Origin: Rebecca billardiae RCC1528
Taxonomy: Eukaryota; Protista; Haptophyta
NCBI GenBank assembly: GCA_965240325.2
Contig: OZ251230.1
Coordinates: forward strand, 1,488,001 to 1,552,000
Reading direction: 5' to 3'
Length of the DNA stretch: 64,000 nt
Position numbers and translations under genes: made by a program. Shown here piece after piece: positions 53,939 through 61,940 of the stretch. Position 1 is the first letter of the stretch; the number at the start of each line of letters is the position of its first letter. The notes below the pieces were generated by a model. The model made no database searches and had not been told where the DNA came from. It was given only the letters and a program-made list of their open reading frames with translations.

Positions 53939-56290
53939 TCATCCAGAGCGTCGAGGCGGCGCGGCGAGGAGCGCGCTGTGCTGTGCAATGACACGCGCGT
54001 CGTGCGGCGCGAGCGCGAGCGCGTGCGACGCGTGCCGCCGCGCGTCGGCGTCACGCCCGCTGTGCGACAGCACAGCGGCGAGGTTGATGTGGCCGATGGG
54101 ATCGGCGCTATTGAGCTGCACCGCCGTCTCGCATGCCTCGAGTGCCTCGCCCCAGCGCTCGAGCTGGCCGAGCAGCATGCACAGGTTGGTGTGCAGGGGT
54201 GCGTACCGCGGCTCAGATGGCATCGCGCGCCGCAGCAGGGCGACGCCCTGGGCAGCGGGCGCGGCCCCGCGGCCGGCGAAGAGGGTGAACGCCGCGTTGC
54301 TCGTGACGACGACGTTCTCGCACGCGCGCGGGCAGCGCTCGAGCGCGGACGCCCACAGCGTCTCCGCCGAGATCCAAGCCGTCGTGCGCTTCGCCGTCAC
54401 AAACGCGCACGCGGCGATGGCGCCGAGCAGCGCGATGTCAAGCGCGGCGCGGGCGAGTCGTGTGCCGTGACCATCGCCGGCCGCCATCAGCCGGCCTGCG
54501 CACAGCCCGAGCAGCATGGCGGCGCCGAGTGAGGGGACGAGCAGCACACGCTCGGCCACGACAAAGCCCACCGGGTGCAAAAGGTTCCACGTCGGCAGCA
54601 GCGGCACGACGAGCAGCGCCAGCGCGAAGAGGGCCGCTGAGGACGCAGACGGCAGCAGCGGTGCGCCGACGCGCGCGCCCACCGCGCCCTCGGACGCCCG
54701 AGCAGCCGCCGCGTGCTCGGCGCTCGGTGTCGCTGAGCCTGAGACAACGTCGCGCGCTCGTCGGCGTGCCGCGCGCGACGGAGGACCGCGTGCCGCCGTG
54801 GACGAGCCGACGGCGTCGCCGCCGCGCGCGCGCGCCTCGCCGCCCCCCGCAGCCAACGTCGGCGGCGAGGAGCGCGGCGTGCCCACTTCTGCCTGGGGCC
54901 CTTCAGAGACGCCCTGCGCGTGTGGCGGTGGTCGAGCTGCGCCCTGGCGGGCGAGGGCGAGCATCCCGCTGCGCGCGCGGCCGAGCACGCGCGCCGCGCA
55001 CACGAGCCCGAGCGTGAGCCACGCCGCGTGCGTGCCCAGCGCGAGAAGCAGCCTCCCCTCGTCGTCAGAGACCACCTGCCAGCCGGGCGCGACAGGCCAG
55101 CCCGGGAGATCTGGCCAGCGCTCACCGGCTGCGGTGGTGTGGTCGGCCGAAGCGGGATCGGGCGGCGGGGACGCGGGCGCGCCGTCGGCGAGGTCGAGGC
55201 CGAATGCGCTGCGCAAGAGCGGGATCGATGCCGCGCTGTAGTCCGGGCACGCCGTCCGCGGCCACGCCACCAGCCACAGCGCGTGTGCCGCCGCGACAGC
55301 GTAGTTGGCCGCGCGGCACGCGCGCGCGCGCAGGTGGCTGGCCGGGTTGTGCGCCGGATGGAAGGTGGGCATGTCGCGGTGCAGCCCGCGGCGCGCGTAC
55401 AGGAAGAGGAGCGCCCAGCCGAGCTGGACGCACGCCAGCCCCGCGTGCGCGCGCCACCAGCCCTGAGAGCGCCAGCCGGCGCGCGGGCGCTCGAGCCCGG
55501 CGCCCCCCGCGCTCCCGGAGCGCGGACGGCTCGGGCCACCGCACGCCTCGGCGAGGGCGGTGCAGATACTCAGCAGCTGGAGGCCCAGACCGAGCGCACC
55601 GGCCATCAGCCCCGTCTCCTTGCATAGCGACGCACATACGCCGAGCACGCACAGCACGCACAGCGCGGCGGTGCTGCGCACGCCGCGTCGGAGCGCACGC
55701 AGTCGTGCCGCGCCTTGTGCCGCATGCGCCGTCGCGGCCTCAGCCGAGCCGTCGAGCGCACGCAGCGTGCGCGCGAGCAGCCAGAGGTAGGCGAGCACGC
55801 ACGCGGCGGCGAGCAGCTCGGCCCGATTGACTAGGTTGCACACGGCCTCCACATGCACCGGATGCACTGCGAACAGCGCGGCAGCGAGCGCGGCGCCGCG
55901 GCGCCCGACAGTTTGCTCTGCACACAGCTCGTGCACGAGCGCGCCACTCAGCGCGGTGACAAGCGCGTACGCGGCCACGTTCTCGAGGTAAAAGGCGCGC
56001 GGCGAGGGGCCATGAAGCAGGTGGCTCGCGCGAAAGCTCGCGGTCGCCAGCGGGCGGAACGACTTGTGGCTCGCCGCGGAGTCGAGCGGCGTGCCCCAGA
56101 AGTCGTGCGTGAGCAAGTCGGCGAGCCACGTGCGCGCGGGCTGCGGCGGGCCGGAGACGAGGGCGTTGTCCACGATGGCGTAGGCGTCGTCGTACACGAA
56201 GGCCTGGGGCTCATGTACACCGTACAACAGCACGGCGAGGGCCGTGGCGGGCAACCACGCCCGCATGGGAGGCAGGGCCGCGGCCGCCAT
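53939..56290 (-). CDS. TMTC-family protein O-mannosyltransferase (membrane domain plus TPRs)
   Basis: FVYDD..AIVDN, DFWG...SHKSFRPL, LFAVHPVHVEAV..RAELL, GFVVAERVLLVPSLG; C-terminal TPRs. Confidence 0.93.
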   Translation of the reverse strand: MAAAALPPMRAWLPATALAVLLYGVHEPQAFVYDDAYAIVDNALVSGPPQPARTWLADLLTHDFWGTPLDSAASHKSFRPLATASFRASHLLHGPSPRAFYLENVAAYALVTALSGALVHELCAEQTVGRRGAALAAALFAVHPVHVEAVCNLVNRAELLAAACVLAYLWLLARTLRALDGSAEAATAHAAQGAARLRALRRGVRSTAALCVLCVLGVCASLCKETGLMAGALGLGLQLLSICTALAEACGGPSRPRSGSAGGAGLERPRAGWRSQGWWRAHAGLACVQLGWALLFLYARRGLHRDMPTFHPAHNPASHLRARACRAANYAVAAAHALWLVAWPRTACPDYSAASIPLLRSAFGLDLADGAPASPPPDPASADHTTAAGERWPDLPGWPVAPGWQVVSDDEGRLLLALGTHAAWLTLGLVCAARVLGRARSGMLALARQGAARPPPHAQGVSEGPQAEVGTPRSSPPTLAAGGGEARARGGDAVGSSTAARGPPSRAARRRARDVVSGSATPSAEHAAAARASEGAVGARVGAPLLPSASSAALFALALLVVPLLPTWNLLHPVGFVVAERVLLVPSLGAAMLLGLCAGRLMAAGDGHGTRLARAALDIALLGAIAACAFVTAKRTTAWISAETLWASALERCPRACENVVVTSNAAFTLFAGRGAAPAAQGVALLRRAMPSEPRYAPLHTNLCMLLGQLERWGEALEACETAVQLNSADPIGHINLAAVLSHSGRDADARRHASHALALAPHDARVIAQHSALLAAPPRRSG

Positions 56291-56370: not shown

Positions 56371-58779
56371 ATGGGGTGCGTTGTCTCCACGCCGGCGGAG
56401 GACGACGAGCCGCTGACGCCCAACGCGTCGGCGCGTAGGAATCCCAACGCGGCAGCCGGCGCAGCCGATGCGGTCGCGCTCGAGCAGATCACCGTCGCCG
56501 GCGACGGCAAGCCCACCGTCGCCGACGACGGCAAGCTGCGCGAGCTGCAGGCCGCGAACGCGCTGCTGCTGATGGAGCTCAGGCGGCTGCGCGCCGAGAA
56601 CGAGGCGCTCCGCGCTCGCGCGGCGAGCGCGCAGGCGGCGGAGCCCGCGCACGCACGGCATGCCGTCCCGGAGGTGGGCGACCACGTGATCGCGCACCAC
56701 TTCCGCCACGCGTACTACACCGCGGTCGTGCGCGAGTTTGACGCGTCGCGCAGGGAGTTTGTCGTCGCGTGGGATGACGGCGACACGAGCGGCACGCGCC
56801 AGCCGTTCGACCGCGTGTGCCGCAACGAGCCGCCCGCGCCGGACGAGGTGGGCGTGGGCACCGCGGTGATGTTCCCGCAGGGCAAGTACCGCTTCTTCGA
56901 CCAGGCCGCCGGCGTCGAGCGCGCCAACATGGACCGGTACCACGAGGGGAGAGTGACTTCGATCGAGCGGGACGGCGCGAGCGGCGCGAGCGTGTACGTG
57001 GGGCGGCACGCGCGCGACGAGTCGGACGGCAAGTGGACGACGTACAAGGGGTACGAGCGCACCTTCCGCTGCGAGCTGCACCAGCTGCGCATCGCGGCCA
57101 ACCTCCTCGACCTGCTCGCGGACTCGGGCGCGGCGCGCTCGGCGGCGAGCGGCGCGATGCGCCGCGGCCAGGCGGGCGGCGGCGCCGCCGCCACCGACTC
57201 GGCACGCTCGTCCAGCGGGGGCGGCGCGGAGGCGGCGTTCGACGTGTACCTCTCGCACTGCCCGGCGGACCGCGAGACCGCCGCGCGCGTCTCCGCCGAG
57301 CGCGCGTGCGACCCGCTCCTCCTCCGCGACGCGCTCGTGCACGACGGCGGCTTGCGCGTGTACGTGGACGAGCACGGCGGCGAGGAGCCTGAGCAGAACC
57401 TGCTCGCGCTGCGCTCGGCGAAGGTGGTGGTGGCGTGCATCTCGGACGCGTACGCGGAGGCGGCGGCGACGCGGCAGGAGCTGCAGTACACGAAGAAGAC
57501 GCTGCGCAAGCCCGTCGTCCCCGTCGTCGTCGGCGAGCGCGACGAGCCGTGGGAGTTTATGCGCTCGCTCGTCGGCCTACTGATCGCAGGCGATCTTTAC
57601 ATCGACATGCGGACGCCCGGCTCCGAGCCCGAGCGGGCGGCGAAGCGCGCCGAGCTGCTGCGCACGGTGCGCGCGCTGGTGGACGGCACGGCGAGCGCGC
57701 ACGGCACCGAGGTGCTCGGCCACGCCGCGGGCAGCCGCGTCACCCCCGCCGACGGGCGCGCGAGCCAGCGCGATGTGTTTCTTTCGTATGCGTGGGCCAA
57801 CAGCGCGCAGGCGGCGCGCGTGGGGCACGTGCCCGCGGCGCACGGCCACGCGCTCGCGGACCCGCGGCGCGTGGCGCAGTCGCTCGAGGCGGCGGGGCTG
57901 AGCACGTGGCTCGACGTGAGCGTGCTCGGCGGCGGCTCGGGCCTCTTCAGCGACATCGCCTCCGGGCTGCAGTCCGCGAAGGTGGTCGTGTGCTGCCTGA
58001 GCGCCGAGTACGCGCGCTCAGAGAACGGCCGCATGGAGATGCAGTACGCGCTCAAGTCGCTCAAGAAGCCGGCGGTCGGGCTGGTGGTGGGCGACGGCGG
58101 GGACTGGCACGAGACGGTGGTCGGGATGCTCGCCGCCGCGCTGCCCACCGTCGACCTGCGCGCCGCCGTCGAGGCGCGCGGGCAGCACGGCTACGACTCG
58201 GCGCTGCAGGAGATGCTCGGCGCCGTCCGCGACGCGCTCGGCGAGCCGCCGCACACACCGCCGAGCGCGCAGGCGCGGGCCGCGGGCGCGGGGCCGCAGG
58301 TGGGCGACCACGTGATCTCGCACCACTTCCACCATGCGTACTACACCGCGGTCGTGCGCGAGTTCGACGCCGCCTCGCTCGAGTTCGTCGTGGCGTGGGA
58401 TGACGGCGACACGACAGGCACGCGCCAGCCCTTCGACCGTGTGTGCCGCAACGAGCCGCCGGCGCCGGACGACGTGGGCGTGGGCACGGTGGTGATGTTC
58501 CCGCAGGGCAAGTACCGCTTCTTCGACCGGGTCGCCGGCGTGCAGCGCGCCAACATGAGCCGGTACCACGAGGGGCGCGTGACCGCGATCGAGCGGCACA
58601 CCGGCGCGGTCGTCTACGTCGGCGAGCACGCGCGCGACGAGTCGGACGGCAAGTGGACGACGTACAAGGGGTACGAGCGCACCTTCCGCTGCGAGCTGCA
58701 CCAGCTGCGCGTCGCGGGCAACGTCATGGCGGCCCTCGCGCTCGGCGGGGACGAGTCCGACGAGGTCGAAGACGTATGA
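56371..58779 (+). CDS. Acylated coiled-coil / Tudor-like / TIR / TIR / Tudor-like protein
   Basis: MGCVVS; FDVYLSH...ACISDAY...RQELQY and DVFLSYAW...CCLSAEYARSENGRMEMQY are TIR_2-like; duplicated VGDHV...YYTAVV...VAWDDGD domain. Confidence 0.85.
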   Translation: MGCVVSTPAEDDEPLTPNASARRNPNAAAGAADAVALEQITVAGDGKPTVADDGKLRELQAANALLLMELRRLRAENEALRARAASAQAAEPAHARHAVPEVGDHVIAHHFRHAYYTAVVREFDASRREFVVAWDDGDTSGTRQPFDRVCRNEPPAPDEVGVGTAVMFPQGKYRFFDQAAGVERANMDRYHEGRVTSIERDGASGASVYVGRHARDESDGKWTTYKGYERTFRCELHQLRIAANLLDLLADSGAARSAASGAMRRGQAGGGAAATDSARSSSGGGAEAAFDVYLSHCPADRETAARVSAERACDPLLLRDALVHDGGLRVYVDEHGGEEPEQNLLALRSAKVVVACISDAYAEAAATRQELQYTKKTLRKPVVPVVVGERDEPWEFMRSLVGLLIAGDLYIDMRTPGSEPERAAKRAELLRTVRALVDGTASAHGTEVLGHAAGSRVTPADGRASQRDVFLSYAWANSAQAARVGHVPAAHGHALADPRRVAQSLEAAGLSTWLDVSVLGGGSGLFSDIASGLQSAKVVVCCLSAEYARSENGRMEMQYALKSLKKPAVGLVVGDGGDWHETVVGMLAAALPTVDLRAAVEARGQHGYDSALQEMLGAVRDALGEPPHTPPSAQARAAGAGPQVGDHVISHHFHHAYYTAVVREFDAASLEFVVAWDDGDTTGTRQPFDRVCRNEPPAPDDVGVGTVVMFPQGKYRFFDRVAGVQRANMSRYHEGRVTAIERHTGAVVYVGEHARDESDGKWTTYKGYERTFRCELHQLRVAGNVMAALALGGDESDEVEDV

Positions 58780-59024
58780 CGCGGACGGACCGCGATCGAA
58801 CTGCGCTTCATATTCAGAGGCTTCGTCATTGGCGCTTACTAGGTGACTGCTCCGGTGGCCTCCAGGTCCGGCCACCGACACCGTCCGGGCCCTGATAACT
58901 GGTGGACACGTGGTTCGTCAATAAGTCGAATTTCGAAACCGTAACGCCCGCGCGGCGGCCGCCCCGGTCGAAGTGGAAACTGAGAGGGGCGTGCGGCACG
59001 CTCATTCTGCAGCAGTCATCTGCG

Positions 59025-61940
59025 ATGCCCAGCCGCTCGCCGTTGGCCAGCCCGAAGCGCTCTCGGTCCCCGCGTCTCTCCAGCACGCGTTCAGCGGTGA
59101 AGGCGAGCAAGATCGTGCACGATGCGCCCTCGTTTCACCCGTCGCTCTCGCACGTGCAAAACGAGCGGGCGTACGAGCCGACCACGCGCGTCCGGCCGCT
59201 CACGCTCGTCGCGATGGTGCTCGGCCTCGTCCTCGCCGCGTCGGGCGCGCATGGAGCCTTCGTGTTAGTGCGTCAGTCGCGCGCTTTCCAGCGCACATCC
59301 GCGCCATCGGCCGCTGATGCGCGCGCAGACGCGTCCGCGGATCTCGCGCACCAAGAGACGAAGACCAACAACGCCATGCAGAGGGTTGCGGAGCTCGCGC
59401 TCGCGCTCTCGGCTGCCCGCGCCGACTCGCAGGCGCTGACCACGGAGCTCGCCGCGCTACGCGCGCGTCATAGCGAGCTCGAGCGCCGTGCGGCCGAGGC
59501 GGAGGCTCGTGCCGCCTCGGCGGCCGCAGAGGCCGCCGATGCGCGCGCGGCGGCCCAGTCGCCACTGCTGAGCGCTCTCGCCGCCGCGGTGGCAAGCGGC
59601 AGCACCGACGGCGGCGGCACCGACGCCACCGCGGCATATGGAGCTCGCGCGACCGCGTACGAGGTGACGAACGCCTCGTGGACGCCGATGTGGGCCACGC
59701 TGCGCGCGGCAGCGACGTCGGTGTGGCACGAGCTGCCGCTAGCGGCGCCGGCCGCGCGCGCGCTCGACGCTGACTGGCGGAAGGAGCTCGCCTGGGCTGT
59801 GCGCGGCGCGCTCGTGCTCGTGCTGCTCGGCGTGCAGCGCCGCCGCCGCGGGCACCCGCGCGTGCGCACGCGGGAGACGCCTGTTGGGCTGGCAGCCACG
59901 GCCGTGCCCACACCCGACACCTTCCAAGGGCAGGAGGCAGCGCCCGCGGCGAGCGATGCCAGCGCCGAGGCGGACGACGCGGGCATCACCGACGCGGCGG
60001 CGCAGCCTGCCACCCAAGCGGCCACGGCGGCGGAGGCGACTGCGCTGGATGGCGCGCCCAGCGAGCGGGTGGCCGAGTCGCCGCCACGGCTGCTGCGCCG
60101 CACGAGCAGCGCCGACGACCCGTGCCGCTCGCTCTCGCCCGATGCGTTCGCGCACTCGCCCGAAGCCTCGGTGTGCCTTGAGGCGGAGCTGCCGCCACCG
60201 GCGCCGCTCGGCCGACCGGCTGCCTCGGCGCTGCCTGAGCCAGTCCCGCCCATCGCCACGCCGGAGGAGGCCACGCCGCCCGAAGAGCCCGCCGTTGCCG
60301 CTCTGCCGGCAGCAGCCGCCGCAGCGCAGACAGCGCCGGACTCCACGGCCACCGCCGCCACGGCCGCGCCCGCCGGCGCGGCCGACGACGGCGCGTCGAC
60401 TCGGCCGGCGGCGCCCGCGCCCGCCGCGCCCGCGCCGTGGTCGCCCGCCGCCGTGCCAAGTCCCCACAGCCCGTTCGTCGTGAGGCCCGCGGCCACGCGC
60501 CTCTCGTGGCCGCCCATGACGCGCGCTGCGAGCGTGCCCTTGCCGCCGACCAACCTGACCCAGCTGCCGTCCACACTGTCGCCTCAGCCGCGCAAGCGAC
60601 CCCACATCGCGCCTGCGTGGTCACCCTCGCTGCCGGCGCCGCAGCCCGCTGAGGCGGAGGCGGCGGGGCCCGAAGCCGCGGCAAAGCCACCCCACATCGC
60701 GCCTGCGTGGTCACCCTCGCTGCCGGCGCCGCAGCCCGCAGAGGCGGAGGCGGTGGCGCCCGCAGCTGCGGCAAAGCCGCCCCACATCGCGCCTGCGTGG
60801 TCACCCTCGCTGCCGGCGCCGCAGCCCGCAGAGGCGGAGGCGGCGGGGCCCGAAGCGTCGGCAAAGCCGGCCGCCGCGGCGCCGGCGACGACGGACGCCT
60901 CGACGCAGGCGGCAGCCGTTCCCGACCCGCCGAGCCCGCCCGCCCAGCAAGCGCCGCCCGAGCGCGCGGATGCCGTCACCGAGACCGAGCCCTCTATGGC
61001 CGAGCGCCGCGCGGCGGCTCGGGACTGGGCGCTGCTCGCGCGCGCGGTGCGCACAGACACGGAGGTGGGCTCGGCGGTGGCCGAGGCGGCGGTGGCCAAG
61101 GCGCGGGCGCTACGCGCGCACCACGAAGCCCTCGCGGCCGATCGGCTGCGCGCGCAGGAGCTCCGCGCCGCGGCCACGCGCGCCACCACGCGCGAGAGGA
61201 CGAACAATGCGGTCACCACGCAACTGCGCGCCGAGCTGTCGGATGCGCGCTCGGCGCTCGCGCGCGCGCAGCGCGACGCGGCCGACGCGCGCGCGCGCGC
61301 CGCTGCCGCCGCCGCCGCCGAGGCGCGGGCCAGTGCGGACACGCGCTCGGGCACGCGCTCGCCACGCTCGCCGTCCTCAGCGGAGGTTGCCGGGGGCGAT
61401 CCGGCGCGCGACAGCCCGGCCAAGATGGCGCAGGCCGCGAGTGACGCCGCCGAGACAGCGGCGGCCGCGGCGGCGGCCACGCCTCTGCAGAAGCGTGCGC
61501 CGCACTCGCCAGCCACCAGCTCGACGACGCCGCCCTCGCACTCGGTCCTGCCGGCGTACGCCCTGCCGCGCGTGCACGGCAGCGCGCCGGTGAGCTCGGC
61601 GCACGGCAGCTCCGCCGTCTTCCGCAGCCCTCCGCGCGCGCTCGGCCCGGCCTCGCTCTCCATGCAGCTCAGCCGGAGCCCGCGCGGCCGTGGCACGCCC
61701 CCGTCGGCTGTGACGGGCACGCCGCCGTCGGCGGCCGCGGCGCACACGGCGTCGGTGGCGCGCCTCGTCGACACGCTGCGAAGGGAGGCGAGCCGGTTTC
61801 CCGCGGAGTCGCCGCAGCGCGCCAAGCTGCTCGAGCTCGCCGCACGCCGGGAGGAGGACTGCGGCGACGCGGGCGCTGCCAGCCAGCCGCAGGCGCAGGC
61901 CGGAGGTGAGGCAGCCGAGGCCGACGCCGACGTCGAGTGA
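59025..61940 (+). CDS. Uncharacterised membrane-anchored coiled-coil, Pro/Ala-rich protein
   Basis: Long ORF with TM segment LTLVAMVLGLVLAASGAHGAFVLV and coiled coils. Confidence 0.7.
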   Translation: MPSRSPLASPKRSRSPRLSSTRSAVKASKIVHDAPSFHPSLSHVQNERAYEPTTRVRPLTLVAMVLGLVLAASGAHGAFVLVRQSRAFQRTSAPSAADARADASADLAHQETKTNNAMQRVAELALALSAARADSQALTTELAALRARHSELERRAAEAEARAASAAAEAADARAAAQSPLLSALAAAVASGSTDGGGTDATAAYGARATAYEVTNASWTPMWATLRAAATSVWHELPLAAPAARALDADWRKELAWAVRGALVLVLLGVQRRRRGHPRVRTRETPVGLAATAVPTPDTFQGQEAAPAASDASAEADDAGITDAAAQPATQAATAAEATALDGAPSERVAESPPRLLRRTSSADDPCRSLSPDAFAHSPEASVCLEAELPPPAPLGRPAASALPEPVPPIATPEEATPPEEPAVAALPAAAAAAQTAPDSTATAATAAPAGAADDGASTRPAAPAPAAPAPWSPAAVPSPHSPFVVRPAATRLSWPPMTRAASVPLPPTNLTQLPSTLSPQPRKRPHIAPAWSPSLPAPQPAEAEAAGPEAAAKPPHIAPAWSPSLPAPQPAEAEAVAPAAAAKPPHIAPAWSPSLPAPQPAEAEAAGPEASAKPAAAAPATTDASTQAAAVPDPPSPPAQQAPPERADAVTETEPSMAERRAAARDWALLARAVRTDTEVGSAVAEAAVAKARALRAHHEALAADRLRAQELRAAATRATTRERTNNAVTTQLRAELSDARSALARAQRDAADARARAAAAAAAEARASADTRSGTRSPRSPSSAEVAGGDPARDSPAKMAQAASDAAETAAAAAAATPLQKRAPHSPATSSTTPPSHSVLPAYALPRVHGSAPVSSAHGSSAVFRSPPRALGPASLSMQLSRSPRGRGTPPSAVTGTPPSAAAAHTASVARLVDTLRREASRFPAESPQRAKLLELAARREEDCGDAGAASQPQAQAGGEAAEADADVE
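60600..60870 (+). repeat. 90-bp coding tandem repeat, 3 copies (PHIAPAWSPSLPAPQPAEAEA...)
   Basis: Near-identical units at about 60601, 60691 and 60781. Confidence 0.95.

Follow-up and report, generated by a model that had tools for sequence, protein, structure and literature searches.

Judged from its sequence, the gene at positions 56371 to 58779 (plus strand) of the window, by which we mean the whole 64,000-nucleotide stretch of contig OZ251230.1 from the haptophyte alga Rebecca billardiae RCC1528 analysed here, is an intact member of an unstudied eukaryotic family built from a head, a coiled coil, a tandem Tudor module, a first TIR domain (TIR1), a second TIR domain (TIR2) and a further tandem Tudor module. 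In the window protein this order reads MGCVVST, leucine zipper, tandem Tudor, TIR1, TIR2, tandem Tudor. We give an even chance to the reading that the protein is a membrane-tethered dimer in which TIR2 would cleave nicotinamide adenine dinucleotide (NAD+), TIR1 would be its regulatory partner and the Tudor modules would bind a ligand, as sequence comparison and structure models suggest. An earlier note on this DNA had listed the anchor motif, the coiled coil, the pair of modules and the two TIR domains, all of which are present; its observed features stand, and its functional interpretation, a lipid-anchored innate-immune NADase, is supported only in part.

The open reading frame begins with an ATG, has no earlier start codon in its frame and runs uninterrupted as one exon of 802 codons plus the stop. 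It is colinear from end to end with the Monosiga brevicollis protein (residues 4-774) and with other full-length relatives, and therefore no intron is required, in accordance with the single intronless gene described in the earlier note; both this gene model and the transcription of the gene are predicted, from homology only. The guanine plus cytosine (GC) content at the three codon positions is 0.75/0.51/0.96, a pattern that at the sequence level is the mark of genuine coding DNA in a GC-rich genome. The GC-rich DNA found here yields many long spurious reading frames, and a chance frame or a decaying, non-functional copy has accordingly to be weighed. Such an origin is hardly credible, however, in view of the difference between the third and second codon positions, of full-length homologs matching at E 1e-95 to 1e-166, of 25 out of 26 conserved TIR2 positions being intact and of the absence of stops and frameshifts. 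Pfam finds no LRR, NB, Roc, COR, ARM or SAM domain in the protein, which agrees with the earlier statement that it has neither LRR nor NB domain. In contrast to plant TNL/STAND receptors, no NB-ARC, NACHT or LRR is found in it by Pfam or NCBIfam.

An exhaustive profile search gave 4,986 matches, with 191 clusters at E <= 1e-30, and the view of the protein as a near-orphan, based on the four to five relatives returned by a word-index search, was rejected on this result. About twenty clusters at 50% identity have the full layout of tandem Tudor, TIR1, TIR2 and tandem Tudor. Its bearers include the choanoflagellates M. brevicollis, Salpingoeca rosetta, S. infusionum, S. helianthica, S. macrocollata and Didymoeca costata, and among animals the corals Stylophora and Acropora, the ctenophore Pleurobrachia, the acoel Symsagittifera and Lytechinus sea urchins. 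Thus the label "algal", which the earlier note had attached to the protein, is too narrow. All named members are annotated as uncharacterised or hypothetical; the note had recognised the architecture from no characterised protein, and this remains true after a survey which shows the family to be wider. The closest relatives are M. brevicollis MONBRDRAFT_27923, S. rosetta PTSG_10079, Stylophora pistillata LOC111345820 and Lytechinus variegatus LOC121423874. The holozoan proteins share with the window protein the order and spacing of domains over ~86% of the length at 34-38% identity, the coiled coil and the TIR2 glutamate, and those of Monosiga, S. infusionum and the corals also a start with Met-Gly and a cysteine. 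They differ from it in that the identity between the two Tudor modules of one chain is 84% in the window protein and 28-57% elsewhere, and in that its host is an alga and not a holozoan.

A careful tree of the TIR pairs shows an unresolved polytomy from which an animal clade (91/93), several choanoflagellate groups and an algal clade (82/86) emerge, the last containing the window protein, its paralog on contig 5 and environmental sequences. A nesting seen in a quick tree had hinted at horizontal transfer from choanoflagellates; the polytomy of the careful tree does not uphold it, and we claim neither donor nor direction. A giant virus as vector was also rejected, no relative having been found in viral contigs. 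The protein language-model Atlas returned only generic TIR clusters, with scores of at most 0.82.

TIR1 (residues 288-432, positions 57232 to 57666) and TIR2 (residues 466-612, positions 57766 to 58206) are supported by Pfam, by domain profiles and by fold; the former is of a divergent type and the latter is conserved and, to judge by its sequence, probably catalytic. The Pfam family TIR_2 (STIR clan) matches twice, with an E-value of 7.6e-27, and scores 94.7 bits where the curated cut-off is 28. In an AlphaFold2 model of residues 285-625 the predicted local distance difference test (pLDDT) is ~80-90 in both TIR cores, and the linker between them (residues 433-465, positions 57667 to 57765) is modelled as disordered, with pLDDT below 50 at residues 442-464. 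Both halves of the model fall among solved TIR structures in Foldseek with probability 1.00. Alignment with VIA-align superposes TIR2 on the TIR domain of SARM1 with a Z-score of 15.8 and a root-mean-square deviation of 2.5 Å over 128 residues, and on those of Hydra TRR-2 and SPARTA with Z ~15; TIR1 is closest to grapevine RPV1 (Z 14.9) and RUN1 (Z 14.8). The two TIR folds that had been proposed from the letters are thus borne out against solved structures.

Each TIR carries a glutamate at the catalytic position, Glu370 within RQELQY (codon 57478-57480) and Glu556 within RMEMQY (codon 58036-58038), exactly where the earlier note had placed them. Profile-to-PDB alignments of both TIR types set them on the catalytic glutamates of Cat1, AbTIR and RPP1, which supports their assignment to the catalytic position, and in both domains the residue sits 12 positions past the serine that ends strand beta-C. 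In the PDB the TIR2 profile matches Cat1 best by sequence (E 5e-9), and the glutamate motif of Cat1 aligns with the NCxME motif of the family. Cat1 and AbTIR are however bacterial proteins with a single TIR and other sensors (CARF in Cat1), and they have Trp-Cys or Trp-Thr where the family has Asn-Cys. SARM1, the best structural match of TIR2, has its catalytic glutamate at the same place in helix alpha-C, and in both proteins the N-terminal non-TIR domains could restrain the enzyme. In contrast to SARM1, the window protein has no ARM or SAM domain by Pfam, hence no octamer formed through a SAM ring, and it combines two unlike TIRs with a lipid-anchor motif where SARM1 has one TIR, at an identity of ~16%.

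The two TIR domains are under very different constraint. Four domain profiles were built from the family alignment and the best 151 matches of the profile search were scanned with them; 62 proteins show a single domain of the TIR1 type and, within the next 90 residues, a single one of the TIR2 type. Glutamate occupies the catalytic column in 102 of 106 TIR2-type domains and in only 22 of 74 of the TIR1 type (elsewhere Leu 18, Gln 11, Ile 8, Met 5), rising to 16/30 for the TIR1 of Tudor-bearing proteins. Over about 40 divergent sequences, 26 positions are invariant or nearly so in TIR2 (n=42) and three in TIR1. Purifying constraint on the glutamate is therefore seen in TIR2 and not in TIR1, whose catalytic column holds Glu in the window protein and Leu in Monosiga. 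The earlier note was right that both glutamates are present here, although the equal emphasis that it laid on them is misleading. The TIR2 of the window departs from the conserved set at one place only, Gly553 (positions 58027-58029), which stands where a cysteine is nearly invariant.

The same TIR1-TIR2 pair is found at the C-terminus of giant proteins of 1,300-3,300 residues. The ones whose names were checked belong to lancelet, abalone, scallops, Lingula, a nemertean and the apusozoan Thecamonas, and in three of the giants (P0042 from lancelet, P0054 from abalone and P0080 from scallop) Pfam delineates LRR-Roc-COR-A-COR-B together with variable N-terminal domains. These N-terminal domains are MBT repeats in the lancelet protein, PLAT in that of abalone and SPRY in that of scallop. 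The ROCO proteins (Branchiostoma lanceolatum "MFHAS1" CAH1232773.1 and those of Haliotis, Pecten, Lingula and Tubulanus) thus share the cassette and its asymmetry with the window protein, the glutamate being kept in 26 of 27 TIR2 and in 3 of 22 TIR1 domains of the giants. In contrast to the window protein, which lacks Roc and COR, their cassette follows LRR-Roc-COR-A-COR-B and has no flanking Tudors. Their TIR pairs form a separate clade (100/100), except for that of Thecamonas, which joins the algal clade (92/88) on the longest branch, 1.57. The Thecamonas sequence is GC-rich, and in the quick tree its composition and that of the window protein were flagged as odd; the placement of the Thecamonas pair is probably an artefact.

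At the N-terminus the first seven codons (positions 56371 to 56391) encode MGCVVST, which matches the N-myristoylation pattern G-{EDRKHPFYW}-x(2)-[STAGCN]-{P} through Gly2 and offers Cys3 for palmitoylation. A start with Met-Gly and a cysteine at positions 3-6 is shared by eight of the 21 members that have a complete leader ahead of the first Tudor, namely the window alga, two environmental algal-like sequences, Monosiga, S. infusionum (two clusters), Stylophora and Acropora; similar starts are found in P0002, P0005, P0007, P0008 (Stylophora), P0022 (Acropora) and P0003 (Monosiga, MGNAC). The genome encodes N-myristoyltransferase (PF01233 at 236.9 and 97.8 bits). The acylation pattern which the earlier note had seen in MGCVVS is thereby substantiated as a motif, which recurs in relatives and for which the genome has the enzyme. 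In the S. helianthica ortholog (P0011) a Pfam PH domain (E 4.8e-10) takes the place of this head, and the contig-5 paralog carries a pair of EF-hands instead. The head is thus variable. EF-hands bind calcium, and the other two forms, acylation motif and PH domain, belong to kinds that target membranes, a series that fits an action at the membrane. The short coiled coil of the earlier note proved to be a leucine zipper of four clean heptads (residues 56-87, positions 56536 to 56631), with Leu56, Asn63, Leu70, Asn77 and Ala84 at the a positions, two of them asparagine, and Leu59, Leu66, Leu73 and Leu80 at d. Leu73 is invariant in the alignment with relatives, which give weak matches to coiled-coil families at the same place.

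The TIR pair is flanked by two tandem-Tudor modules, the N-terminal one at residues 99-246 (positions 56665 to 57108), assigned by Pfam, AlphaFold2 and structural matches, and the C-terminal one at residues 634-786 (positions 58270 to 58728), assigned by Pfam and by its identity to the first. Pfam recognises PTM_DIR17_Tudor twice in the protein (30.5 bits against a cut-off of 27.2). The AlphaFold2 model of the 150-residue module, computed from 49 aligned copies, is all-beta with two barrels, at pLDDT 92.5 and a predicted template modelling score (pTM) of 0.86, and it resembles the solved tandem Tudors of SETDB1 (Z 12.7 over 124 residues), Sgf29 (9.6), UHRF1 (8.9) and BAHCC1 (8.8); Foldseek matches it also to 53BP1, SAWADEE and Agenet pairs, and barrel 1 matches the KDM4A Tudor in sequence (E 5.5e-8). 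The module of ~140 residues in the earlier note is therefore of Tudor type as proposed, although each is a two-barrel tandem Tudor and not a single unit, so that the protein has four Tudor barrels. Among 71 module copies, position 110 is Trp, His or Tyr in 66, position 115 is Tyr, Phe or Trp in all 71 and position 116 is Tyr or Phe in 69, while Trp134, Asp136 and Asp138 are kept in 63, 69 and 61 copies, respectively. These aromatic and acidic positions lie in the W-DDGD region of barrel 1, which would correspond to the methyl-lysine cage of 53BP1; an aromatic cage for methylated lysine or arginine is only suggested by the sequence. Tudor units are also found in arrays without a TIR domain, with 29 single-barrel matches in P0041 (Pythium insidiosum GLD98134.1), ~22 in P0059 and 15 in P0114, and P0033 has four full Tudor modules and no TIR.

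Taken together, these features suggest how the protein may work. Gly2 would be myristoylated and Cys3 palmitoylated, as the motif and its recurrence indicate, placing the protein on the cytosolic face of a membrane, and the four-heptad zipper would pair two chains in parallel. TIR2, for which the fold, the position of the glutamate and its conservation across the family are observed, would cleave NAD+ to a product that we can only propose. TIR1, given its relaxed conservation, may be a diverged and mostly non-catalytic domain that regulates or templates TIR2, even though its glutamate is kept here. The tandem Tudors would bind a ligand, most likely a peptide with methylated lysine or arginine in view of their fold and of the aromatic and acidic positions, and binding of this ligand, or clustering, would turn TIR2 on. 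Eukaryotic TIR domains with the glutamate, from diverse animals and unicellular eukaryotes, are reported in a 2026 preprint to synthesise cyclic ADP-ribose in a glutamate-dependent manner (10.64898/2026.04.20.719644), and a catalytic TIR2 is plausible on this account; the list of domain abbreviations in that work shows that its assays included Roc-COR proteins (10.64898/2026.04.20.719644).

Several observations weigh against this mechanism. Non-catalytic TIR domains of the MyD88, MAL, TLR and IL-1R types fit the model almost equally well (MyD88, MAL, IL-1RAcPb and TLR TIRs at Z 13-15). The tryptophan of the WxxxE motif, which profile alignments place four residues before the glutamate in AbTIR, Cat1 and RPP1, is replaced by asparagine in the family (S-x-N-C-x-M-E), and SARM1 too has tryptophan at this position. 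This tryptophan is frequent, though not universal, among characterised NAD+-cleaving TIRs; with asparagine in its place the product, and even the activity, is not readable from the sequence. Furthermore, the near-invariant cysteine three residues before the glutamate is glycine in the window protein (Asn552-Gly553). The relative geometry of TIR1 and TIR2 is unreliable, at a pTM of 0.50, and consequently the model demonstrates no contact between them. As for the Tudor modules, position 110 is histidine in the window protein, and not tryptophan or tyrosine, and known tandem Tudors read nuclear histone marks, a poor fit with a lipid anchor.

The match to MyD88 and its like, and the asparagine in place of tryptophan, would also be expected of a lipid-anchored adaptor without enzymatic activity, in which the TIR pair nucleates TIR-TIR assemblies with other proteins, as in Toll-like receptor adaptors, and the Tudors recruit. 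MyD88 has glutamine at the glutamate column, as do the 11 TIR1-type domains mentioned above, and the animal adaptor TRAM is N-myristoylated. We nevertheless consider an adaptor unlikely, since the glutamate is retained with 25 further conserved TIR2 positions across very distant taxa, so that a pure scaffold is hard to uphold; nor is a receptor partner known, although the Toll-like receptor genes of this genome were not searched for. The nuclear role of known tandem Tudors raises in turn the possibility of a chromatin-linked protein, in which the Tudors read histone methyl marks, the TIRs change nuclear NAD+ locally and MGC is not lipidated. The modules share the tandem-Tudor fold with SETDB1, SGF29, the UHRF1 tandem Tudor domain, 53BP1 and KDM4A (Z 12.7 to 8.9 where measured); these and BAHCC1, the close structural matches, are all histone readers, and MBT repeats, which likewise read methyl-lysine, occur in a related ROCO protein. 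These known readers are nuclear chromatin proteins, and the modules of the window flank TIRs in a chain that bears a lipid-anchor motif. A chromatin-linked protein is very improbable, however: the start with Met-Gly and cysteine recurs in the family, a PH domain substitutes for it in one ortholog, and Pfam finds no DNA-binding or other chromatin domain in the window protein. We retain the membrane-tethered dimer with a catalytic TIR2.

The two modules of the window gene are unusually alike, being 89.5% identical over 437 nucleotides (positions 56665-57108 against 58294-58728) and 80-84% in protein, compared with 28-57% between the two modules in 11 other family members. This points to a recent intragenic gene conversion or re-duplication in the lineage of the window. 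The genome carries a second copy of the family on contig 5 (1948536-1950912, minus strand; L002:886-3459), with ~52% identity to the window protein. P0001, at first taken as an independent relative, is 100% identical to this paralog and was rejected as such; in our alignments the paralog is P0001 as deposited, which reads through one intron and is not to be relied on in its C-terminal part. The C-terminal Tudor module of the paralog lies in three pieces, which implies two introns, and is uninterrupted in the window gene. Conversion of the C-terminal module of the window by its intron-free N-terminal module could have erased these introns. The environmental sequence P0006 groups as the sister of the paralog, and the gene was therefore duplicated before these two parted.

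These two copies, in a genome of 72 Mb with 14 TIR_2 matches overall, bear on the role proposed in the earlier note, in which the protein is an innate-immune sensor-effector with both TIRs acting as NADases and the paired barrels sensing a pathogen. Both glutamates are indeed present and correctly placed in the window protein and its closest relatives, and the cassette ends LRR-Roc-COR proteins with variable N-termini (MBT, PLAT, SPRY), in a layout of sensor, switch and effector. We regard this proposal as decidedly unlikely, though: the family has not expanded here, the neighbouring genes, a TMTC-like mannosyltransferase and a low-complexity reading frame, are unrelated and uninformative, the constraint on TIR1 is relaxed throughout the family, the layout is the same from choanoflagellates to sea urchins, unlike that of fast-evolving receptors, and no relatives were found in the viral contigs. 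The immune role thus finds no direct support. Under the mechanism that we favour, with TIR2 as the enzyme, the protein could serve in immunity, in regulated cell death or in some other stress signal.

The remaining parts of the protein are a Gly/Ala/Ser-rich linker between the first Tudor module and TIR1 (residues 247-287, positions 57109 to 57231), which is unaligned among relatives, and a short acidic tail (residues 787-802, positions 58729 to 58776). On the opposite strand the divergent neighbour at 53942-56290 encodes the TMTC-like protein O-mannosyltransferase, with DUF1736 and TPR. Its first ATG is ~80 bp from that of the TIR gene, and the two genes therefore have in common a very short bidirectional promoter region. 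Downstream, a reading frame at 58902-61940 (plus strand) would encode 1,012 residues rich in alanine and proline; it has no Pfam match, and a motif of ~24 residues (KPPHIAPAWSPSLPAPQPAEAEA...) stands in it three times in tandem, in nearly identical form.

We found no paper on this architecture, on the Monosiga locus tag or on the combination of TIR and Tudor in choanoflagellates. The words "Tudor" and "Monosiga" do not occur in the searched text and supplements of the study of eukaryotic TIRs (10.64898/2026.04.20.719644), and "Tudor" does not occur in the searched parts of a TIR survey and of two 2026 preprints. Two 2026 preprints point out that many TIR clades restricted to eukaryotes remain unstudied (10.64898/2026.04.30.722052, 10.64898/2026.04.20.719644), and a TIR atlas of 2026 lists several such clades as uncharacterised. 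What is new here is that the TIR cassette is asymmetric and that it is linked to methyl-reader domains, the sequences themselves being already public.

Three traits make the family unusual: a pair of unlike TIRs, one enzyme-like and one relaxed, the flanking tandem Tudors and the membrane-anchor motif. In bacteria, plants and animals alike, signalling in immunity and cell death has TIR domains as its enzymatic core, and the flanking tandem Tudors would tie protein methylation to NAD+ signalling. More speculatively, and with considerable doubt, the TIR1-TIR2 pair may be an ancient, portable eukaryotic effector cassette, a pre-assembled asymmetric dimer in which a dead TIR1 shapes the active site of TIR2, and which has repeatedly been joined to domains that read protein methylation, tandem Tudor in this protein and MBT in the lancelet ROCO protein. 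The mechanism that we favour predicts that Glu556 matters and Glu370 does not, and the outcome would extend to the ROCO-TIR-TIR proteins of invertebrates. Orthologs in S. rosetta, which is genetically tractable, in corals and in sea urchins make the family testable. If the cassette reading is true, a methylated ligand would gate an NAD+-derived signal in a membrane-proximal pathway common to choanoflagellates, early-branching animals and some algae, between which the gene may have been transferred.

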